Source: Blastocystis sp. Blastoise (Eukaryota; Protista; Bigyra: Opalinata). From it: 64,000 nt of DNA. Numbering within the stretch: the stretch's first letter is position 1; each line of letters opens with the position of its first letter. The stretch covers positions 62,001 through 126,000 of the forward strand of contig JBBPEB010000015.1 of the NCBI GenBank assembly GCA_039096225.1, written 5' to 3'. The notes beneath the pieces were generated by a model. It had not been told where the DNA came from. It worked only from the letters and a program-made list of their open reading frames with translations, and did no database searches. This document shows positions 1 to 30,399 of the stretch, piece after piece. A program made the position numbers and the translations under genes.

Positions 1-1051
1 ATGTATGAAGTTATTACTTATTACTTATTACTATTTATAAATATAGTAGTAAATAAAATTCGCATTAACGATTTTTGAATTAATTCTCAATGCTATTAAT
101 TGTAGTATTGTTTGTAAGTGAAATGCTATCATAACATCTTCCTTATTAATTTTTGAGAGTTGTAATATTTAAAAATTGAATTTATAAAATAATAAATAAT
201 TAAATAAAAATAAATAAATAAAAGAATTATATTTTTTATTATGTTGATTTAAGTTAAAATATAAATATACTTAAAATCGTTTTTGTTAACTACTTTAAAC
301 ACTGTAATGAATACATCATTAACTTTTGAAAATTATTGTGACGAGACATTGTAATGTACTGAATTATATATTCTATGCTTCAAATTCTTATTATACTTTA
401 TTCCTCATAGCTATTATAACTATATATAAATAGAATTTAACTTAATAAGACTTTCAAAAAGAAGATCAGTTTATAATTCACTGTTTTATTGTCATGATGT
501 TGTTTATTTATTATATACTAGAACACTATATCTAGAAGACAACAATTACAGTTTCAATTATTATAAATATCACTTAATGATACATGATTAACACATTCTC
601 TTTTATGTCAAGTATTAAACACAGATTCTGTTTTATATACATGCCAGAAATATATATATATTTGATTCTAATACTTTAGTAAAAAAATAATAGATGAAAA
701 TACACTTTTAGCCAAAATTAATAAAACACATAAATATTATTAAAACTATATCTATTTTCCACATTTATAAGTGATTATTTAAATATATATCTTATAAATT
801 GATATATACATATGGAAGTATTAATATACTTTCCTAAGAAGATAAATATAACAGTTTCAATATCAAATCTATTATAAAATCTATAAAAAAAACTTAAGTC
901 AGGAATTGGACCTGAAAAGAGTCGATGAGACTTTTCCTTACTATCAAAGCTTAAGTAGAGTTTATATATATATATATCTGCATATATTAAATATAATTAT
1001 AAGTAACTTAAAAACATGAAATCCTATATATAAAAAGAATAAAATATAATG

Positions 1052-2300
<1,249 letters not shown>

Positions 2301-2319
2301 AATAGAAATAAATAAATAC

Positions 2320-3113
2320 TGCTAATTCAGGAATAATATATAATGTAAAGAATTCATTAATATTCACATCCTCTATATATATAATAATAATAATATATAT
2401 ATATATATATATACTATTATAATCTTTGATGCCTTGCATCGCTGTTTGGAATCCAGAAGATATATACATAAATAGAGAGAGGCATGCTTCTTTTTCCCGC
2501 CATTGGGAGGGATTCGACAGCGCCAAGAAAGGAGACATTGTTTGCATTGATATCATAATTAACTATATATAATAAATATAATAGAAATTATAATAATAAG
2601 TAATAAAAATAATAATAATATTAATAATAAATATTATAATAATAAATATATTAATAATAATAAGTATAATAAGTATATATATGTATATATACTTGTTCAT
2701 TATAGAATTGTCTCATAGAATACAGTACATCATGACACCTCGTTTACAGCTATTGCAGTTAGCATCCTATGGGGATTATGGGGGATTATATAAATAAAAT
2801 TTATTAGATAGAAATATATAGTTAAAACTCATTATATATATAAATATAAACAAAATTTATTATATATATAGATAAAATCTGTTATATATAAATATATAGC
2901 AGATTTAAATAATAATAATAATATATAAATAATATATTCTATAAATACTATATATATATACTTCTAGTTCATTTTGAATATACTCATAAGGCATGTCTTC
3001 ATAGTTATTCATATCATCATCAGTAAATAATAAACAAGGAATAATAATATTCTGTATAATAATTTTTAGACTTTCACCGGTAAACAAGGACTGATTAGAA
3101 GGAAGCTTAGACA

Positions 3114-3152
<39 letters not shown>

Positions 3153-3197
3153 ATATAATTTAACATTATAATAAGATTTATATTTATAATTTATTAG

Positions 3198-3259
<62 letters not shown>

Positions 3260-3548
3260 GCAAAATATGTTAATCTATTTTTATATATAGTATTATATCG
3301 ATCTTCTTCTTTATATTTAACATCACTTAATATATTCCAGACTTTTTCAGTAATAGTCTTAGCATAAGGAAGAAATAATAAGTTATTTCTACTCTCCATT
3401 CTATATATATATATAAATAGATTATGCTTATTAGTATTATTAACTTTAGTACTATTATATTTCACTTATTATATATATATATACGTAGAAATGATTTCAA
3501 TGATATTTGCCTTCAATCTCTCAACTGGACCTTCTTCATAACCACTTT
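2320..3548 (-). pseudogene. CSE1: Exportin-2/Cse1 internal gene fragment (left-arm copy)
   Basis: Mirror of 12199-13425, including the same frameshifted exon. Confidence 0.75.
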
Positions 3549-5406
3549 CTATATATATATATATATCTTAATAATAATAATAATTATTATTATAATAATA
3601 AAAGTATATAATAATAATAATAAAATCTCTAAGTATAATAAAACCAATATAATAATAATACCAATAAAACCTATATAATAATAAAATCTATATAATAATA
3701 ATAAAATCTATATAATAATAATAATAAGTATAATAATAAAACCTATATATATATAATAATAAGTATATATATATATATATAGAAAAAAGTAGCAATATAT
3801 ATATACACATCAATATTAATAAATTAAAACCCCCATAACCTATATATATATATAATTATAGCAATAATACTAATGAAAATAATAATATGTTACAACAAGA
3901 TAACATATGTATAATAAAGAAATAAATAAACTTTTCATTAAAATAATTATAAACATGAATAGATGATTGAATATATTTACAAAATAATATATGAAGGCAA
4001 TAAATATTAGAAAGTAAACTAAATAAATAAAACACATAGAAATGATAATGTGGACAAACTAAAAGACAAGACAAAAAAAGAGTTATAAATAGTTTAATAT
4101 AAAATGATAACTATATACAGGGAAAAAATAATGAAACAACAAAGACGAATAAAAGCACAATGGGAGATTTGCAACGTGCAAATAGATTATCTTACACCAG
4201 AATCAAAGCCACAAACCCAACATTGAGTTTTAACGTTATCGGTACAACAGAACCAATCTATATAAGGAAAATAAAAAGTACAAGAATGTAGATTGTGTTG
4301 AATAGTTAGAAACTTACAATTCTGACAATAAGGGATCTGCAACGACATGACAATTGAGAGACAAAGCTACAATAAGCAGCATAAGAAAATTTTAATATTT
4401 TAAATAATAAAAATTAATAATGATTATTTTATCAATATAACCTTTAAAAAAATATTTTTCGTGAATACATAAAAAATTAATTAGTCTTTCCTAGATTTCA
4501 ATATAATAAATCTATTCATCATTATCAAAAAGCTGGCTCAACAATAGTATATTCTATACTATAATTGTCTTTCTATTATTGTAATTAGTGTACACAAGAT
4601 TTCGACTCAATTCATGATCTACTCCATTTCTGTGACAAATTGAAATATCAAAAAACACAACAAAATATGTAGATTGTATCGAAACATTCTGATTATCTAG
4701 TATTCAAAAATATTATCATTTAGCCAGAATTATAGACAATGATGATTTTGTTTATCTCAGGCCTTATTTCTAGTTCATCACATAATCACAAGAGTGTGCA
4801 CTATTTATTATGGACAATATAATATGATATATTGGTAAATTACTGTGAATCTTGAATCCACTATAATTAACGTACATATATAGTTTGATTCTTTATTAGT
4901 TTAGTATACTGATCTTTTGTCATTTTAATTGTTGTTGTTATTTGTAAATAATAATATTATTATTTCATAATGATTATTATTCTTTCAAAGAGATTATTTT
5001 TTATATTAATATTATTAAATATGTGTTATTTTCCAAACAAAAGAATATGAATTTATTGCATAATAAATATATAAAAAAAGTGAATACATAAATAAATTAA
5101 TTAATTAGTTATATATATATATATTGTATATATATATAATATTTATAAAGAGAAATATTAAATTATATGGATACATCAATATATTAATTATATGTTATTT
5201 GTATTAATTAAAATTAAAAACACTAGCTGTTTATCAGAAATAAATAATAAATAAATATTTATATGAACTTCATGATATATAAAGAAAATAAAAAGAAAAA
5301 CATATTCGTAAATAGCTAATATTAAAGAGGCTTATCTATGTTAATTGCAAATTGTTTATTTAAAATACTACAGTTTAATTAAATTTGATTAATATAGTAA
5401 TATATT

Positions 5407-6062
5407 TTATTGAATTCCATTTTTACGTTGTTTACATCGTGTTATACGTCTAGGAGTGAAACGTTTCGCATGCCTCGTTCTTTTAGCATTTGGATCATTA
5501 ATTACAGACTCTTCTGAATCTTGAGAGGATAAGTTAATTTTTATGTACTTCCTTTTAATAGGGTAATGTTTTTTGTTTATGATTTTTTCACATGACGCGT
5601 TTATATGATCAGTAAAGGCATTATCGCTAATATCTACATCTTCTATTATATAATCACTGATTTCACTGGCACTTTGTTGGGTCTGTACTGATCTACTGCC
5701 ATCACTCTTTGCTATGTCTAATAAGGCTTTCGGGATATCAGAAAAGCGTCTTTTTACACTATCATATCCTTCAAGGGAACACATTATTTTCAATTTTTCG
5801 TTTATTTCATTTCTTACTTCATGTGATTTACATTCATAATTAATACTTGAATTCGTAAACCAAGATAATAGATTCTTTGCAATATATTCAATATTTTTTA
5901 AAACAAAAATTCCACAATCATATCCATTTTTCTGTTGAGGAGATTTCTATTTATTATATAAATATAAATAAAAATATTAAATTTATATAAATATAAATAA
6001 AAATATTAATAGTAATATAAATACAAATTTTAATAGTAATATAAATACAAATATTAATAGTA

Positions 6063-6093
<31 letters not shown>

Positions 6094-9000
6094 TGTACAC
6101 ATATTTGAATTTGAATGTTAACATGCTTAAATGAATCAATTAATTTGGATGTCTCAGCTGTACTTTCACAATTCAGGGCTATAATTCTTGTTATTAAACG
6201 CATGGTAAACTCTGAAATATTTGCATTATGTGTATTGAGTCCTACATTGTTTGAATCATAGCACCTAAGAGTAATATTTTTTTTATTTGGTTCAGAATGT
6301 GTTTTAGCAGTTTCAATCAATTTAGTGATTTCATTTAGTTGAACAGTAAATAAAATCCAATGATTGTGTATTAAGTACGGGATAATGACTATTGATGTAT
6401 TACAATTTATAATTTTTTCAATAATCTCATTCAAATGTTTTTTATCATTATCATTTACATTATCAATAGTTTTACGTTCATAATAATTAATAATGTATAT
6501 ATAGTTCTTAGAATTGTCACTACAATATTTTCTGTAGTTTATTAACCAAATATAATTAGAATAGGTATCAATTATAAAATCATTTATATATAAATCATCT
6601 AGAGCACTTAAATCGTTATTATTCGTTAAAATATTCTAAACAAATATATTAGCTGAGTAATAAAATACTGTTGCCTTGTTATAAAGTGAATGTTTGTAAT
6701 CATCATCGTCATTAGTTGAACCTAAAGTAGTAGTACTAGCACAAGATATTATACTTATGCCAGATTCCAAATCATTCTCAATAGTATCAACACTCAAACT
6801 ATCATCAGATAATGCAAAATAATCGTTAATAACAAAATTCTGTGCTTCATGATTCACGTTTAACTGGTTTAAATTAGTATTTACAATATTATCCAAAGTT
6901 TTTTCTATAATAAATGATAATAATTTCGTATTATAATGACTGTATTATACATGAAATAATATTTAGTTGGTATATATGAATAGCGACATACGTTCATAAG
7001 GAATACTTCTATCAGATTTATTTTCATTTGATTCAACAACTGAATGTTTCAGTTCATAAGTATCATCAATCTTGTTAATGGTTGAATCTTCATAATTAAT
7101 AACTTCTTTAAATTCTTCAAAGCATTTGCTTATATCTTCATTGTAAACATATGTTAAATTTTTATCCCATAAAATATTAAGTTTATAAACATCAGAGAGA
7201 ATATTTAATAACGTTTGTATGCATAAAGGAATAATTTCACTACAAATTATAACAGTTTTACATCTCAATATATTTGACTCTATACACTGCTGCAACAAAT
7301 CAACTGCATAATTTGTTAAATCACCAATATTTAGTTTTAATTCCTTCATATTATAAAAGAAACTTGATGCATAAGGACGTTGATCATAAGTTATACTAAT
7401 GGTATACCTGGAATCTATATAGGTGTACTAATAATTCTATTAACAATAATTATAATAGTAATGATACATATTGCCAATCAAATGATAATAATAAATTAAA
7501 ATATAATAAAGATATAATAAGAATATAATTATTAATATAATAATAGCAGCTATACTCTCTTTTTCTTCTTCTTCTTCTTATTATAAATATTATTATATTT
7601 ATTATATTTATTAATATTATACTGATTATTATTATTATCATAAAAAAAATTAATTACTATGTTACATATATTAATATATACAATTTAAAACTAGAACATT
7701 GACATTGATCGAAAACTGTTTATATAATAAGAAAAAGTTGTTTATATCACAGATACCTAAGAAATAAGAAAGAATAAAATATAAAATACAATTCATATAT
7801 AAGTCTCCATTCATATAAGCTTGCTTAACGTTTATTAGAGATGAATATGGTACTATAAAAAAATGGTAATCTATATATAGTTATATACATACGGTGTGTA
7901 AACACTTGAAATGACTTACAACTCTCAATAAAGGGAGCTTGTACTAAAACCATTAATATCGTTAATTTTGAAAGAAATCTGCATATGCGAATGTCTTTAA
8001 TTCGTATGCTATCATCATATAAGTCACCATCTGATGATAATAATAATATTTTAACAAATTTACATGTTACCAACAATTTTGATATTCTGATCTTTATATC
8101 GCCAATTGTTATTTCATTAGGTAATGTAATTACATTATATTCACCTGTCTTAACATTAATAACATTTGCTTGTATCTATACAAAAATTATTTTTAAAATG
8201 AAGGCTTTTAGAATAAGAACCGGAACATACAGTTTTATCTAGTATAATATTGTTTATTGATTTTTTAATAAGATCTTCTGAACACTTAGAAGAATATAAT
8301 TCACGTAACTGTGACATACCAGACTCAAGATTAACTTCACTTTGAGATGTAGAATTTTCGATACTACTTACTTGCACTAAATATTATAATATGTTATAGT
8401 AGTATATATTTTTATTATATACTTAATTAATTAAAATATAAAAAAAGATATATATAAATTTGATATATAAATATATAACATACTTTTATTAAATGGATTA
8501 TATTTTTCAAAGTATGTACAGAATGTAATAAAATTTGAAAATTTTAATGGATAGAACAAATCATTTATACATGTACAAGCAACCTAATAATGATATAATA
8601 CATATTATAATAAATACTGAAAAGATAGTTTTGTATAGATTTAATAATGCTTCCATATATTCTATAATTTTATAATTTAATAATATTATGTATATACTTT
8701 CTTGTGTGATGAATATATGATCAGAATCAATAACATCATAACATAATTTATTCATCCTTGATAATGACTCACTAATAGAAGAATCAGTGATTATAGGATC
8801 ATATATATAGGAAACAAATCTATAAAAAACTGGTGGATTACATATATTAACATTCAGCGAATCATATAATCGCTTTAATATGATTGTAGGAATGTTCTCA
8901 AACTTTATATCATTTTGTTTAATGAAAAATAGACAATGATCACATAATACTTCTGTTGCACAGCGACTACAGTTACAAACAAGGGTAACAGTTGGAATAT

Positions 9001-10788
9001 ATTGTATTGTATAAACAATCATCTCATCAATTCTGAAGACATAGAATTTGTTAATACCTTGGGAATTTATTATATACTGATTAACGTCAAGGGCATCTAT
9101 TTTTTGATGTATAGAATTTGGCATAGTTCCTTTAATTAATATATTATCACAATTAGTTATCATCATTTTTATATTTTCTAAATGATAAAAGAAAGGAAAC
9201 ATAGCCAATGAAGATTTTCTGACGACTTTAGCCCAAACTGAATGAATCTGTTCTGTAGGATTATTACTCAGTATCGTAAGATTAAACCCAGCGTGCATAA
9301 AACGACAAAACTTCTTGTCGCAACTCTGTAAGTAACAACTAAGAATTATAATATTTGATAAATTATTTTGTGTTTCATCATTATAATAATGAGAAGCTTC
9401 CTCCATTTCTGTATATAGTAAAGTATCTGCAATTTCTTGTGTTTCTGCATTTGAATATTCAAAAAAAATGTGATTAATATAAGCTGATTCCTTAATGCAC
9501 ATTTTTCTATACATAATACACCTGGCATGAAAAAGACACATTACGTTAGTAGCATTTACAAACACACGTTTTATACTTTCTGTGAGACCAATTAAACCAT
9601 CTGAATGTATTACATATTTTGCATCTTTATTCATTCCTATAATATAATATAAATATAGATAATATATTAAGTAGTATAATATATATATAGTATAATGCAT
9701 ATATATAATATAGTATTAATGTATATACTATATAATACATATATCTTATATTATATTATATGTAATAATAAATGATAAAAGAAATAATATAACATTTTGC
9801 TTACCATGACTAACAAGAAATAAAAAAAAATCTTCCCAAGAATAAGAACTTTCGCCACCAAGATCTATCATGTACCCAAGTAAATATTTTTTGTTATAAC
9901 TAGACAGAACAACAATATTATAGATTAAAAATTTATCTTTAGACTGAGAATGCGTCGCATCAATGTAAATTTCATTGTTAAACAATTTTTCAAGATTGAC
10001 CACAATATTTTTGTATATGACAATGAGTCTGACAAAGCTTCTATTATTCTTATCGATATATAATTTATAATCGATTTCATCTGAATATTTCACTGATAAT
10101 AACATTGACGGAAGATACTTAAATTCTTCTTCTGCAGCACCATAAATTCTGGAGAACAATTTAACATACCAATGATCTATTACAGTTTGAGAAGTAAATG
10201 GAAACAACGCCTTAATAACTGGATCATTACGAGAATACATACCAAAAGGATCGTTTAGAAACGAATCATATTCTTTTTCTTCAAAATCTTCATACACATA
10301 TGTGGTTTTAGTATACGAGATCTTTAATATAGACTCTTTAGCTAAAAAATATTAATAATATTAAATTAAATATAATAAATTTAGTCAAATAAAATTAACA
10401 ATAGAATAATAATTATTGATAATATGAAATAAATATATACTATCTGAATTATAAACAGTATGCAAATCATACGATTGTTCTGGCGTGGCTAGATGAAATT
10501 AAATAAAACAGAGTATAATCAATAATATGTACGTTTATGATTATGTTTGCACATATAAGATGTTACATCAAATTGGAGACCATTCTTTTTATAAATAACA
10601 TAAAATAGGCACCCATCTGTATTGCATATGTACTTCAAAGGATGGCCACCTCTTTGCTGTACCGAGAAGTGACTTTTTGATCTATACGCAGCGAATGATG
10701 CTTTCAATTCTTCACGAGTATCATAATGATTTTTAAGTCCAATGTTGAATAATTCAGTATATCCAGCAACACCTTTCGATATATCCAT
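5407..10788 (-). CDS. MULE transposase (MuDR DBD + DDE + SWIM) fused to a ubiquitin-like segment and a Ulp1/C48 cysteine protease, ~14 exons, ~1,400 aa
   Basis: YDTREELKASF...KYIC...GC...HNH (MuDR-type DBD); IYIDATH, GGESSYSWEDFF, HSDGLIGL...VF...CLFH, SNNPTEQIHS (DDE and CxxH); CNCSRCATEVLCDH (SWIM); DLSALDDLYINDFIID, IPYLIHNHWIL, CYDS, SPQQKNGYDCGIFV (Ulp1). GT-AG splicing keeps one frame from ATG 10788 to stop 5407. Confidence 0.88.
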
Positions 10789-10912: not shown

Positions 10913-15743
<4,831 letters not shown>

Positions 15744-15809
15744 GTAAAATTTGAAGTCAAATAATTATAAAATAACTATAATAAATTGATAAATAACTTG
15801 AATTAAATT

Positions 15810-15952
15810 AGCCAATAGAAAAATACTTTGAGTTAACAGTAAGAAATTTTAAGACATTTTAATAATTCAATACTAGTCGAGTCTAATAGAATTCTATAAA
15901 AAAAATAAGCCAATAATAATAAAGCAGTCTAGTCAGCTAAAAATGATTGGCT
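15810..15952. promoter_or_regulatory. Cluster of three CCAAT-box-like motifs upstream of the aspartic protease gene
   Basis: AGCCAAT at 15810 and 15908, ATTGGCT at 15946, 230-370 bp upstream of ATG 16181. CCAAT/ATTGG also occurs upstream of FTHFS (30631, 30673) and scramblase (27218, 27241). Confidence 0.4.
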
Positions 15953-16180
15953 AAATATGAAATATTGTTCCTAAAAGTCAATTGCGTTCGAATAGAATTC
16001 TATAGTCGAGTTTAACGGCAACTAGGCGTAAAACGTCGAGGTAGGTCATAATCTCTCAAATGTGTCCTTTTTGATGACACACAATTAATGATAATGACAC
16101 AGACCTTTTCACATTCTTTTTTCTCTCATTTTCTTTTCATTGATATAAAATAGTCATACATTAATTCACGTCTTTTAAAG

Positions 16181-28190: not shown

Positions 28191-30399
28191 TTAGAATAAT
28201 CCATGAACAGTTCCTGTCTTGCAATCGATATCGATATCATAGAAACCAGGACGAGTAGGAAGACCAGGAATAGTCATAATAGATCCTAATACAGGATAAA
28301 CAAATCCAGCACCACAAGAAGCATGGATATCACGAACAGTGATCTTAAAACCACGGGGACAACCAAGAAGAGTAGGATCAGCAGAGAAAGAATACTGAGT
28401 TTTAGCCATACATATAGGGAATTTGTTATATCCTTGAGCTTCATAACAAGCAATTTTCTTTTCAGCTATTTCACTATATTCAACAACATCACCTCTATAG
28501 ATCTCACGAACAATAGTTTGAATCTTTTCTTTAATAGATAAGTTATCTTCATAAATAAGTTTGAAGTGAATAGATTGACGAACAGCTTCATCAGTACAAG
28601 CTTTAACAACAGATTCAGCAAGGACTTTAGCTCCCTTAGCACCTTCGGTCCAATGATTACTCATACAAGCATCTAAAGCACCAGCTTCTAAAGCAGCACT
28701 ACGTAACATTTCAATTTCCTTATCCGTATCGGTAGTAAATCTATTAACACAAACAACACAAGGAACACCATATTTTAAAACATTTTGAATATGTTGTTGC
28801 ATATTACATAAACCTTTAGCAAGTAAATCAAGATTCTCTTCAACATATTCCTTTTGAAGTCTTTGACCAGGTTGAACTTTAGGACCACCTCCATGCATTT
28901 TCATAGCTCTTACAGTAGTTACAAGAACTACACAATCAGGAGCTAAACCACTTTGTCTACATTTAATATCAAAGAATTTCTCCATACCAATATCAGCACC
29001 AAAACCAGCTTCAGTAACTACATAACCATCTTCACCAACTAATTTAAGAGCAATTTTATCAGCAATAATAGAAGAATTACCATGAGCAATATTAGCAAAA
29101 GGACCAGCATGAACAAATACAGGTGTACCTTCAACAGTTTGCATAAGAGTAGGTTTAATAGCTTCTTTCATTAAAACAGTAAGAGCACCAGCAACACCAA
29201 GATCTTCAGCAGTTACAGGTTCACCCGATTTAGACATACCAATAACCATAGCACCTAAACGTTCTCTCATGTTTTCAAGAGAAGTAGATAAAGCAAGAAC
29301 AGCCATGATTTCAGAAGCAACAGCAATATCAAAGCCAGTTCTTCTAGAATGACCACTTTCAGTAGGAGCTAAACCTATTTCAATTTCTCTTAAGAAACGA
29401 TCACAAGTATCAACAACACGTTTCCAAGTAATAGTTTCAGGATCAATATCTAAACGAACTAATTTAGTACGTTCTTCTTCAGTAAGTTCATCAGCTTTTG
29501 TTTTATTAATACCTAATTTAGCAAGTCTCTTTAAAAGAGGAGCAGCAAGAGGTTCATATTCACCATTCTTATTCTTAGGACAAATACGTCTAAATAAAGC
29601 TTCATCAGTTTGAGTAGATTCATGATACATTCTAGCATCAATTTGAGCAGCAAGTAAATTATTAGCAGCAACAATAGCATGAATATCACCAGTTAAATGA
29701 AGATTAAATTCTTCCATAGGAATAACTTGAGAATAACCACCACCAGCAGCACCACCTTTAATACCAAAAGTAGGACCTTGAGAAGGTTGTCTTAAACAAG
29801 AAAATACTTTCTTATGAAGAGCAGCACCAAGAGCTTGAGAAAGACCAACCTAAAGAGAGAGGTATTATTATTATTTATATTTATTATTTATTATTTATTA
29901 TTATTTATATTTATATATTATTATAAATGATTATTATTTAAAAAAAATATGAATTATAACAAAATAAAAATAAAAATATAATCATTATCTTCATTAAATA
30001 AATAATTACATACAGTACAAGTACTTTTACCTTCACCAAGAGGAGTAGGGTTAATACCAGTAACAAGAACCTATAAATAAAAGAAAAAATAATAATGAAA
30101 ACAACATTATATAAAAGAATCATACATAATGACCATTCTTTTGATCCTTAAGACGATCAATAACTTCAAGACGAACTTTAGCTTTAGTATTACCATAAAG
30201 CTCTAATTCTTCAGGTAAGATTCCAGCTTCCTTAGCAATAAGATCAATATTGATAGGCTCAACAGATTGAGATATCTCAATATCAGAAGGAACGGGAAGC
30301 TTAAAATCTACACGAGCAGCAGCACGATCAACAATTTCTATACACAAGAATAAAAATAAGAAAATCACAGATTATATAAGAAATCATACCAAAAGACAT
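28191..30399 (-). CDS. fhs: Formate--tetrahydrofolate ligase (monofunctional FTHFS); start may extend upstream
   Basis: [102 protein letters not shown]. Confidence 0.96.

Follow-up and report, generated by a model that had tools for sequence, protein, structure and literature searches.

Results

Structure and copies of the element

Positions 5407-10788 of the window, the 64,000-nucleotide stretch of Blastocystis sp. Rus-B ('Blastoise') DNA analysed here, harbour on the minus strand a multi-exon gene with transposase and protease motifs. The gene occupies the centre of a 16.4-kb Mutator-like element (MULE) whose inverted arms measure 5.14 kb and which is flanked by a 9-bp target duplication. 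Alignment of the arms against each other (5,147 nt, 99.85% identity) places the left arm at 1-4833, with a further 311 bases outside the window start (to G000:C4:61689), and the right arm at 10913-16055, where it reaches the element terminus. The termini begin with GAGATTATGACC, and the same 9 bases border both of them: the right copy of the duplication, TCAAATGTG, is located at 16056-16064, and the left copy immediately precedes the left terminus, beyond the window start. Arms of 5.14 kb greatly exceed the 20-640 bp listed for the inverted repeats of MULE groups (PMC6446971).

A second full copy was identified at a different insertion site on another contig (C2:178978-195659). Over the 6.08-kb centre the two copies do not present a single substitution, and their four arms differ by 2-8 substitutions per 5.14-kb arm. 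Two 417-bp derivatives with ends at 96-97% identity were also detected, as was a sister family (family B, the element in the window belonging to family A) with 709-nt arms, whose termini share GAGA and ACCTCG with those of family A. Four independent insertions, two of each family, are bordered by 9-bp duplications (TCAAATGTG, AAAAAATTC, AAAAGATAA and ATAAAAAAC), a length within the 9-11 bp that define the MULE superfamily. The left arm carries a minisatellite and a fragment of a Cse1/exportin-2 gene. All four arms contain such fragments, and a locus resembling the parent gene, at C19:474393-475494, encodes a protein 82-91% identical to them, as in Pack-MULE-like gene capture.

The DDE core described below, the 5.14-kb inverted arms and the 9-bp duplications at four insertions support the assignment of the element to the MULEs, in agreement with the original prediction. 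The occupation of two sites by near-identical copies with intact frames, together with the short derivatives, indicates that the element is young and probably still mobile. The original proposal of a probably active element is in keeping with this, although only two full copies exist.

A 14-exon reading frame encoding transposase motifs

The prediction that the open reading frame fragments of this locus are joined by GT-AG introns into one frame was borne out. On the minus strand, 14 exons and 13 GT-AG introns define a 4,227-nt frame devoid of internal stops, starting with an ATG at 10788 and ending with a TAA at 5409-5407. The exons have a GC content of 27.5%, versus 12.7% in the introns. Given that 7.6% of the codons on this strand are stops, exons that stay open for 313, 179, 179 and 141 codons greatly exceed chance expectation. 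The exon set originally proposed was nonetheless incomplete, having overlooked three small exons (2, 5 and 6, below).

Exon 1 (10533-10788) contains the start codon and a Cys/His zinc-finger-like motif (CNTDGC at 10626-10609 and CKHNH at 10551-10537). It is 47% identical to its family B counterpart, in which the start Met occupies the equivalent place. No Pfam family, including FAR1 and the expected DBD_Tnp_Mut, was found to match this exon or residues 1-110, and only a Cx4C...CxHxH pattern, conserved in family B, could be recognized. Exon 2 (10441-10488) is a 48-nt micro-exon bounded by GT-AG introns, with phase 1 on entry and exit, which is present in the public gene models P0001 and P0004 and conserved in the family B models. 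Exon 3 (9805-10341), with 51% identity to family B, encodes the first half of the DDE core, including the first Asp (IDATH, 9964-9950). After the 168-nt intron 3 (9637-9804), exon 4 (8698-9636) provides the second Asp (HSDG, 9607-9596), the CxxH motif (CLFH, 9538-9527), the Glu (NPTEQ, 9262-9248) and a SWIM-like CxCx8CxH motif (8977-8936). All DDE and CxxH residues were hence found where they had been predicted, with IDASH, HSDG, CVFH and NPSEQ as their family B equivalents; the catalytic positions were assigned from known MULE motifs rather than from a structure.

Profile searches with P0001, the public model of this gene, identified the Pfam Transposase_mut family (PF00872) with 28 bits for a cut-off of 21, the NCBIfam IS256 transposase (NF033543) with an E-value of 3.9e-13 over residues 226-420, and the Pfam MULE family (PF10551) with 27.5 bits, 0.1 bit under its cut-off of 27.6. 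Individual exons yielded E-values of just 0.03-0.05, because intron 3 divides the MULE domain. The nearest Atlas neighbours are MULE/SWIM clusters (0.92-0.94). Regarding the proposed SWIM domain, family B conserves the CxCx8CxH motif seen here, and SWIM-bearing clusters figure among the Atlas neighbours, but the SWIM profile (PF04434) did not return a Pfam match even at an E-value of 10. A search of 1.84 billion representative proteins with exon 4 produced three matches, two of them from this same genome. By sequence comparison, the transposase core is a very divergent, new stramenopile lineage, for which no close relative was detected beyond this genome.

Linker exons and a ubiquitin-like segment

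The transposase exons are followed by a linker. Exon 5 (8618-8661) is a 44-nt micro-exon, conserved in family B, with GT-AG borders and fitting phases, that is absent from the public models of this family. The 100-nt exon 6 (8484-8583) encodes a conserved YPL...FEK.NP block and bridges an apparent stop at 8561; it matches family B with an E-value of 5e-10 and a further copy on contig C5 with 4e-8, and a homologous exon appears in the public family B models. Exon 7 (8231-8376) is a poorly conserved linker, the junctions of which equal those in P0001 and P0004.

Exon 8 (7893-8175), entered through a 55-nt intron that bypasses a stop at 8156, encodes a ubiquitin-like segment. Downstream of it lie intron 8 (7853-7892, 40 nt), with a family B intron at the same codon and phase, the 63-nt exon 9 (7790-7852), with equal length and phases in family B, and intron 9 (7757-7789, 33 nt). 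The 75-nt exon 10 (7682-7756) precedes the longest intron (267 nt, low-complexity), and family B presents the same phase-1 junction at the same Tyr codon.

The identity of the ubiquitin-like segment is a call at the motif level only. Its pattern NIKT...P.D...F.F.S..G.L, with a P.D...F.F/L.S..G.L block resembling ubiquitin, is conserved in four families, and ubiquitin-family clusters dominate its named Atlas neighbours, at just 0.79-0.81. The copy on contig C5 was matched in exon 6, exon 11 and the C-terminal half of the segment, the N-terminal half being read by eye, and family C matched the N-terminal half. The ubiquitin-like character put forward originally is therefore visible in the conserved pattern, but was not substantiated by any significant profile or fold match: the best Pfam match, to a plant ubiquitin-like family, has an E-value of 0.1, searches of PDB sequences returned no match, the segment is absent from the PF00240 matches of this genome at an E-value of 1e-5, and a single-sequence AlphaFold model was poor (pLDDT 56). 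No Gly-Gly was found after the last strand of the segment in family A, nor in family B or the C5 copy, the C-terminal halves of which were read. This suggests that the segment is not processable, and makes the self-processing once envisaged for this protein unlikely.

A C48 protease domain downstream in the frame

Exon 11 (6992-7414) encodes a conserved middle region of unknown fold that matches no Pfam family, and exon 12 (6669-6904) an acidic, Ser/Asp-rich spacer preceding the protease. Exon 13 (6099-6635) encodes the first part of a C48 domain, with the His (HNHW, 6368-6357) and Asp (YDS, 6260-6252), and exon 14 (5407-5946) the Gln and the catalytic Cys (PQQKNGYDCG, 5940-5911), followed by a basic tail (5484-5422) and a TAA that overlaps an AATAAA. 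The predicted Ulp1 set is thus complete and in the order His, Asp, Gln, Cys. The Asp was placed by position alone, and in family B an Asn replaces it.

On its own, exon 14 matches the Pfam Peptidase_C48 family (PF02902) with 36.8 bits for a cut-off of 20.7, and the public model P0001 does so with 45 bits, the match spanning positions 57-194 of the 217 in the profile. In alignments, the block around the His pairs with its counterparts in SENP5 and SENP2, and that around the Gln and Cys with its counterparts in SENP5, SENP8 and SENP2. The PDB sequence matches (SENP5, SENP8, SENP2 and Ulp1) have E-values of 0.002-0.05, at which they do not distinguish among substrates. A single-sequence AlphaFold model of the domain was poor (pLDDT 44). 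Overall, these results support the prediction of a C48 (Ulp1/SENP) protease downstream of the transposase in the same spliced frame.

Evidence for a probable single transposase-protease product

In family B, which is only about 43% identical, all exons are conserved in the same order and with the same intron phases, linker included. Linker exons 5 and 6, the ubiquitin-like segment and the middle region are all conserved there with the same junction phases, and no conserved start was found within the linker exons. The four public models (KAK8803205.1, KAK8795504.1, KAK8814268.1 and KAK8803343.1), products of a Braker3, Stringtie and Mikado pipeline with RNA-seq input, each combine the transposase and the protease in one protein. 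Their middle part differs among them and from the 14-exon model, and they continue into the Cse1 fragment of the arm, which makes them unreliable in detail. Searches of protein databases did not identify a transcript-derived protein for the fusion. Given that the linker exons are phase-compatible and conserved in family B, and that four public models join both parts, we infer that transposase and protease are most likely encoded as a single protein by one mRNA.

Alternatively, the element could give rise to a transposase without protease, about 640 residues long and terminated by the stop near 8561, and to a second protein with the ubiquitin-like segment and the C48 domain, originating from two genes or from alternative splicing. 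Read-through frames do end at 8561 and 8156, exon 4 is followed by a 36-nt intron that keeps the frame, and retention of the next intron, the 34-nt one after exon 5, would lead to the stop at 8561 and hence to a transposase-only product. Exon 7 could moreover offer a separate start at an in-frame Met, and the Arabidopsis element has three genes, of which one bears the Ulp1 domain. The tails generated by read-through are, however, not conserved between families, whereas exons 5 and 6, which lie between both parts and have no start of their own, are conserved in family A, family B and the C5 copy with phases that fit on both sides. Together with the fusion in four public models, this renders the production of two proteins unlikely. 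We assign even less credence to the 3' end of the public models, in which the last exon is spliced at about 5447 into the Cse1/exportin-2 exons of the left arm, yielding a chimera of 1,497-1,499 residues. The Cse1 exons are located downstream on the same strand, and the extension features in both P0001 and P0004, with a Pfam Cse1 match of 67.9 bits over residues 1318-1447. Yet family B, which lacks a Cse1 fragment, conserves the basic tail encoded past this donor, the TAA and its overlapping AATAAA lie at 5410-5405, and P0001 and P0004 are in conflict elsewhere, as illustrated by read-through of intron 9 and, in P0004, by a spurious intron within the last exon.

The notion that this is a dead or domesticated copy, with a frame intact merely because of its youth and a transposase and protease that no longer work, appears highly improbable. 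It would be in keeping with the finding of two full copies only, the strong divergence of the core from all other known MULEs and the Asn that takes the place of the protease Asp in family B. Speaking against it are the full set of catalytic motifs, the separate 9-bp duplication that flanks either copy at its own site, and the existence of short derivatives whose ends match. Moreover, the exons have been kept open and conserved between families that are about 43% identical, which needs long-term selection. The data hence favour an autonomous Mutator-like DNA transposon whose single gene encodes a fused transposase-protease, a reading that we regard as likely, inclusive of the roles and origin proposed below.

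Intron differences between the two copies

The window copy and the copy on contig C2 differ by ten exact GTA..TAG segments, each present in one copy and missing from the other, against the background of no substitution in 6 kb. The C2 copy lacks introns 8 and 9, and its frame remains open for 143 codons across their positions. The window copy lacks eight introns that in the C2 copy interrupt exon 11 (at window positions 7328/7327, 7241/7240, 7157/7156 and 7103/7102) and exon 13 (at 6435/6434, 6370/6369, 6305/6304 and 6276/6275). All ten differences coincide with intron positions of family B, indicating that these introns are ancestral and have therefore been lost, two of them from the C2 copy and eight from the window copy. 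The exactness of the ten segments was counted as evidence that the introns are spliced in vivo, and the losses would most simply have arisen via spliced RNA.

Discussion

Ulp1 domains in Mutator elements are already known from plants, hydra and lancelet; what is new here is a very divergent stramenopile lineage. Among the described systems, the Mutator (MuDR-type) elements of hydra and lancelet also combine a Mutator-superfamily transposase with an Ulp1 C48 domain, which is listed for them and aligned within 'Mutator TPases' (Bao, Kapitonov and Jurka 2010, PMC2836005). Those elements are from animals. Compared with that description, the element reported here belongs to a gut protist, a stramenopile, its protease is preceded by a ubiquitin-like segment and a conserved middle region, and it combines 5.14-kb arms with a core lacking detectable close relatives beyond this genome. 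With the Kaonashi/KIU genes of the Arabidopsis VANDAL (non-TIR) MULEs and with CUMULE of melon, Mutator-like elements likewise carry and conserve an Ulp1 C48 domain, and KIU-type VANC proteins have been reported to counter the silencing of their own elements. In Arabidopsis KIU, the Ulp1 domain belongs to a separate gene of an element without terminal inverted repeats; in Blastocystis it forms part of the spliced frame of the transposase itself, and the inverted arms of the element are very long. An assignment to the plant KI-MULE/Kaonashi type was rejected on these two grounds. Ginger1 resembles the Blastocystis protein in joining a cut-and-paste transposase and a C-terminal Ulp1 or OTU cysteine protease in one protein, encoded with at most four introns, but it constitutes a separate superfamily, with a Gypsy-integrase-type DDE core, 44-270 bp inverted repeats and other target duplications (PMC2836005).

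The predicted product, of about 1,408 residues, would comprise, in this order, a Cys/His zinc-finger-like N-terminus, a Mutator/IS256 DDE core with CxxH, the SWIM-like CxCx8CxH motif, the conserved linker, the ubiquitin-like segment without Gly-Gly, the middle region, the C48 protease and the basic tail. In the proposed mechanism, the N-terminal part would bind the arms and the DDE core would cut and paste the element. The tethered protease could free the transposase itself, or proteins of chromatin or repair at the element, from SUMO or a related modifier, and this de-modification may aid transposition or expression. The countering of SUMO-dependent silencing put forward originally would be a hypothetical role of this activity. 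The ubiquitin-like segment would act as a built-in interaction module rather than as a cleavage site, and the basic tail might function as a nuclear signal.

As to the intron differences, spliced RNA of the element gene would have been copied back to DNA very recently, with each copy exactly losing a different ancestral set. A possible route would be the repair of double-strand breaks, such as the gaps left by the transposon's own excision, with a transcript or cDNA as template. Exact, in-frame intron loss has likewise been described for the transposase genes of another group of DNA transposons, the CACTA elements, and explained by recombination with cDNA made from mRNA that had been spliced completely or in part (Buchmann et al. 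2014, PMC4158355). For CACTA, the losses were inferred from old families in different plant species, whereas in Blastocystis two copies without a substitution in 6 kb differ by ten losses, the set is not the same in both, and the direction is fixed by the sister family. We tentatively suggest, as a possibility that falls somewhat short of an even chance, that the Blastocystis lineage loses introns exactly and extraordinarily fast by copying spliced or partly spliced RNA to DNA. If the RNA-to-DNA reading holds true, the two copies would represent a clean, polarised snapshot of intron loss.

Structure of the gene

The minus strand of window positions 5407-10788 presents a chain of open segments that join, as 14 exons separated by 13 introns, into a single frame of 4,227 nt, running from an ATG at 10788 to a TAA at 5409-5407 with no internal stops. 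All 13 introns are of the GT-AG type, nearly all of them following the pattern GTA...TAG, and the exon borders were traced by hand and then checked by script. Stops make up 7.6% of the codons on this strand, and GC content differs sharply between exons (27.5%) and introns (12.7%), indicating that the frame is not a product of chance. The original prediction that these segments splice into one frame was thus borne out, and all the motifs it listed were found at their assigned positions, but its exon chain had overlooked three small exons (10488-10441, 8661-8618 and 8583-8484). A ciliate-type genetic code was rejected, since the stops are spliced out and a TAA closes the frame.

The host genome spans 33.3 Mb in 34 contigs, with a GC content of about 22%, and the window corresponds to G000:C4:62001-126000. 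Blastocystis sp. 'Blastoise' is the Russian-tortoise isolate Rus-B, whose genome was assembled with Flye from Nanopore reads and then polished with DNA reads of both Nanopore and Illumina origin; its gene annotation came from Braker3, Stringtie and Mikado, informed by RNA-seq (PMC10690189). The same publication reports overall percentages for transposons and does not describe Mutator elements.

Inverted arms, target duplications and related families

The gene is the sole long frame within the 6.08-kb centre of an element of 16.37 kb (window -311 to 16055), flanked by inverted arms of 5,147 nt that are 99.85% identical. The element termini start with GAGATTATGACC, and a 9-base target duplication, TCAAATGTG, is present at both ends. 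A second copy of this element (family A), with its own 9-bp duplication, was located on another contig of the Rus-B assembly (G000), at C2:178978-195659. In addition, two 417-bp elements (G000:C24:73233-73649 and G000:C16:274003-274419) carry inverted ends 96-97% identical to the element termini, and look like a MITE-type derivative.

Both arms contain a fragment of a Cse1/exportin-2 gene (window 2420-3550 in the left arm, mirrored at 12198-13325). A parent-like locus at G000:C19:474393-475494 shows 82-91% protein identity to the arm fragments, which are read from this resemblance as a Pack-MULE-like gene capture. The arms also hold an ATA-type minisatellite (window 1090-1270, mirrored at 14470-14650), and changes in its repeat number constitute almost all the differences among the four arms of the two copies. 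An ordinary host gene lies near the element: a 508-codon open exon on the minus strand (window 28191-29717) matches formate-tetrahydrofolate ligase with 654 bits.

A sister family (family B) with the same domain order was identified in at least three copies, including those at G000:C33:752170-760065 and G000:C4:574179-585143. Its 7.9-kb element presents 709-nt arms, related termini and 9-bp duplications, its transposase exons are 43-51% identical to those of family A, and its C4 copy harbours a 3-kb nested insertion within a TA-rich intron. Further, older relatives reside on contig C5 and at 1.74 Mb of C4. In the C5 relative (G000:C5:272900-293600) the gene is spread across about 21 kb, and a 4.3-kb sequence is present as two inverted copies, 90.7% identical, at two sites between exons.

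Domain composition of the predicted protein

Database searches used as queries single exons or two public models of the family A gene (P0001 and P0004). Exon-by-exon profile searches returned only weak transposase matches, since the MULE domain is interrupted by intron 3. P0001 matched Transposase_mut (28 bits) and MULE (27.5 bits), and the NCBIfam IS256 transposase profile was matched with an E-value of 3.9e-13 over a region spanning both Asp residues and the Glu. Together with the inverted arms and the 9-bp duplications, these matches uphold the earlier interpretation of the locus as a MULE-type element, which is right. The assignment of the C-terminal region to the Ulp1/SENP-type (C48) proteases was likewise confirmed, with exon 14 passing the Peptidase_C48 cut-off by itself and P0001 scoring 45 bits. 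The His and Gln/Cys blocks of this domain can be aligned with their counterparts in SENP5, SENP8, SENP2 and Ulp1; the family B protease presents Asn at the position of the catalytic Asp of family A. AlphaFold, run without an alignment, modelled the C48 domain poorly, with a pLDDT of 44.

No profile recognised the SWIM signature or the N-terminal Cys/His pattern, both of which are nonetheless present and conserved. Nothing useful came from PDB sequence searches whose queries were the ubiquitin-like segment encoded by exon 8 (Ubl), exon 13 by itself and the transposase half. The Ubl is the weakest of the domain calls. It gained no support from Pfam, from the PDB sequence search or from PF00240 matches, and AlphaFold without an alignment yielded a poor model (pLDDT 56). 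Ubiquitin-family neighbours in the Atlas (0.79-0.81) argue in its favour, and a ubiquitin-like pattern is kept at this position in four families of the Rus-B genome: the NIKT strand and a P.D...F.F.S..G.L block were detected in families A and B and in the C5 copy, and the NIKT half only in a further related family (family C). The segment is rated a probable beta-grasp domain. No Gly-Gly ends the Ubl in families A, B and C5, those in which the C-terminal half was read, so it does not qualify as cleavable. The proposal that the protein might process itself therefore loses its basis and is unlikely.

Intron differences between the two family A copies

No substitution separates the two family A centres over 6,079 bases, a count to be read in the knowledge that genuine substitutions between repeat copies can be lost in polishing; the four arms are 2-8 substitutions apart. 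The centres do differ by ten indels, each of which corresponds precisely to a segment that reads GTA...TAG in the coding direction: eight extra introns of 32-72 nt in the C2 copy, and two, of 40 and 33 nt, in the window copy. The differing sites fall within window 6275-7328 and 7757-7892, corresponding to G000:C2:186856-189073. Family B carries introns at all ten sites, matching in both codon and phase. These introns are therefore ancestral, and the differences reflect loss; gain is rejected on the same evidence. At least 23 introns were present in the ancestral gene; the window copy keeps 13 of them and the C2 copy 19.

As read from the assembly, on which the loss calls rest, these intron losses are recent and precise. 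That RNA reads used in polishing produced the pattern is considered unlikely, given that the published methods describe polishing with Nanopore and Illumina DNA reads only. A cDNA or transcript from which only some of the introns had been spliced might have converted the gene and so caused the losses; this would fit the two introns that the window copy retains between its two lost blocks. Intron differences of this kind are absent between the family B copies, which have diverged by 1.1%. Loss of introns through reverse transcription has a precedent in the transposase genes of CACTA elements (PMC4158355), although there the losses are not between copies as similar as those in Blastocystis.

Evidence for a probable single transposase-protease protein

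The original prediction held that transposase, Ubl and protease form one protein. Protein databases returned only NCBI models for this gene, and no transcript-derived protein sequence, so the argument is a comparative one. Exons 5 and 6 separate the core of the transposase from the Ubl, contain no start codon themselves and match in phase the exons on either side; family B conserves the two of them, and the C5 copy conserves exon 6 as well. The read-through tails that stop at 8561 and 8156 show no conservation, and a transposase-only isoform generated by intron retention is possible. From the Ubl onwards, every block follows in the same order in family B, and the junctions agree in codon and phase. 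This applies to the two halves of the Ubl, a pair of small exons, the middle region, the acidic spacer, all three blocks of the protease and the basic tail. Furthermore, transposase and protease are fused in four public models from two families. The conserved linker exons, the fitting phases and the fused models make a single protein quite likely, and the proposed fusion is probably right. At the DNA level, the junctions left by the lost introns also indicate very recent transcription and exact splicing of the part from Ubl to protease.

The public models P0001 and P0004 are wrong in detail and disagree with each other in the middle of the gene. The deposited models of the 5407-10788 gene, KAK8803205.1 and KAK8795504.1, are mis-spliced and skip the conserved exons 8661-8618 and 8583-8484, and in one of them the 33-nt intron at 7789-7757 is read through and a spurious intron is placed in the last exon. 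At about 5447, inside the C-terminal tail that is conserved with family B, both models use a donor that takes them into the arm and its Cse1 fragment. Tracing the exons anew refines the annotation of this recently published genome, whose public models mis-splice the gene in the linker and at the 3' end.

Relation to known Ulp1-bearing transposons

Mutator, Ginger and further DNA transposons have acquired Ulp1-type proteases on repeated occasions. Among Mutator elements, Ulp1 domains occur in Arabidopsis, maize, rice, melon and grapevine, as well as in hydra and lancelet, and they are also found in Ginger1 transposases (PMC2836005 for the latter three). In Arabidopsis the domain is encoded by a gene of its own within non-TIR elements and has been linked to anti-silencing; the animal Mutator entries list it with the transposase (PMC2836005). 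A survey of MULEs in six groups, including stramenopiles, mentions neither Blastocystis nor any protease (PMC6446971). Among 1.84 billion representative proteins, the only close relatives of the core were those of the Rus-B genome itself. The host group, the extreme divergence of the core, the Ubl-like and middle regions preceding the protease and the 5-kb arms are all new.

Intact, very young and hosted by a culturable protist, with a sister family of the same design and a protease apparently joined to the transposase, the element provides a compact test case for the role of the protease. The intron result may outweigh the fusion in importance. How exact intron loss takes place, and at what rate, is a long-standing question, ordinarily accessible only through comparison of distant species; in Rus-B, two otherwise identical copies reveal the losses as well as their direction.
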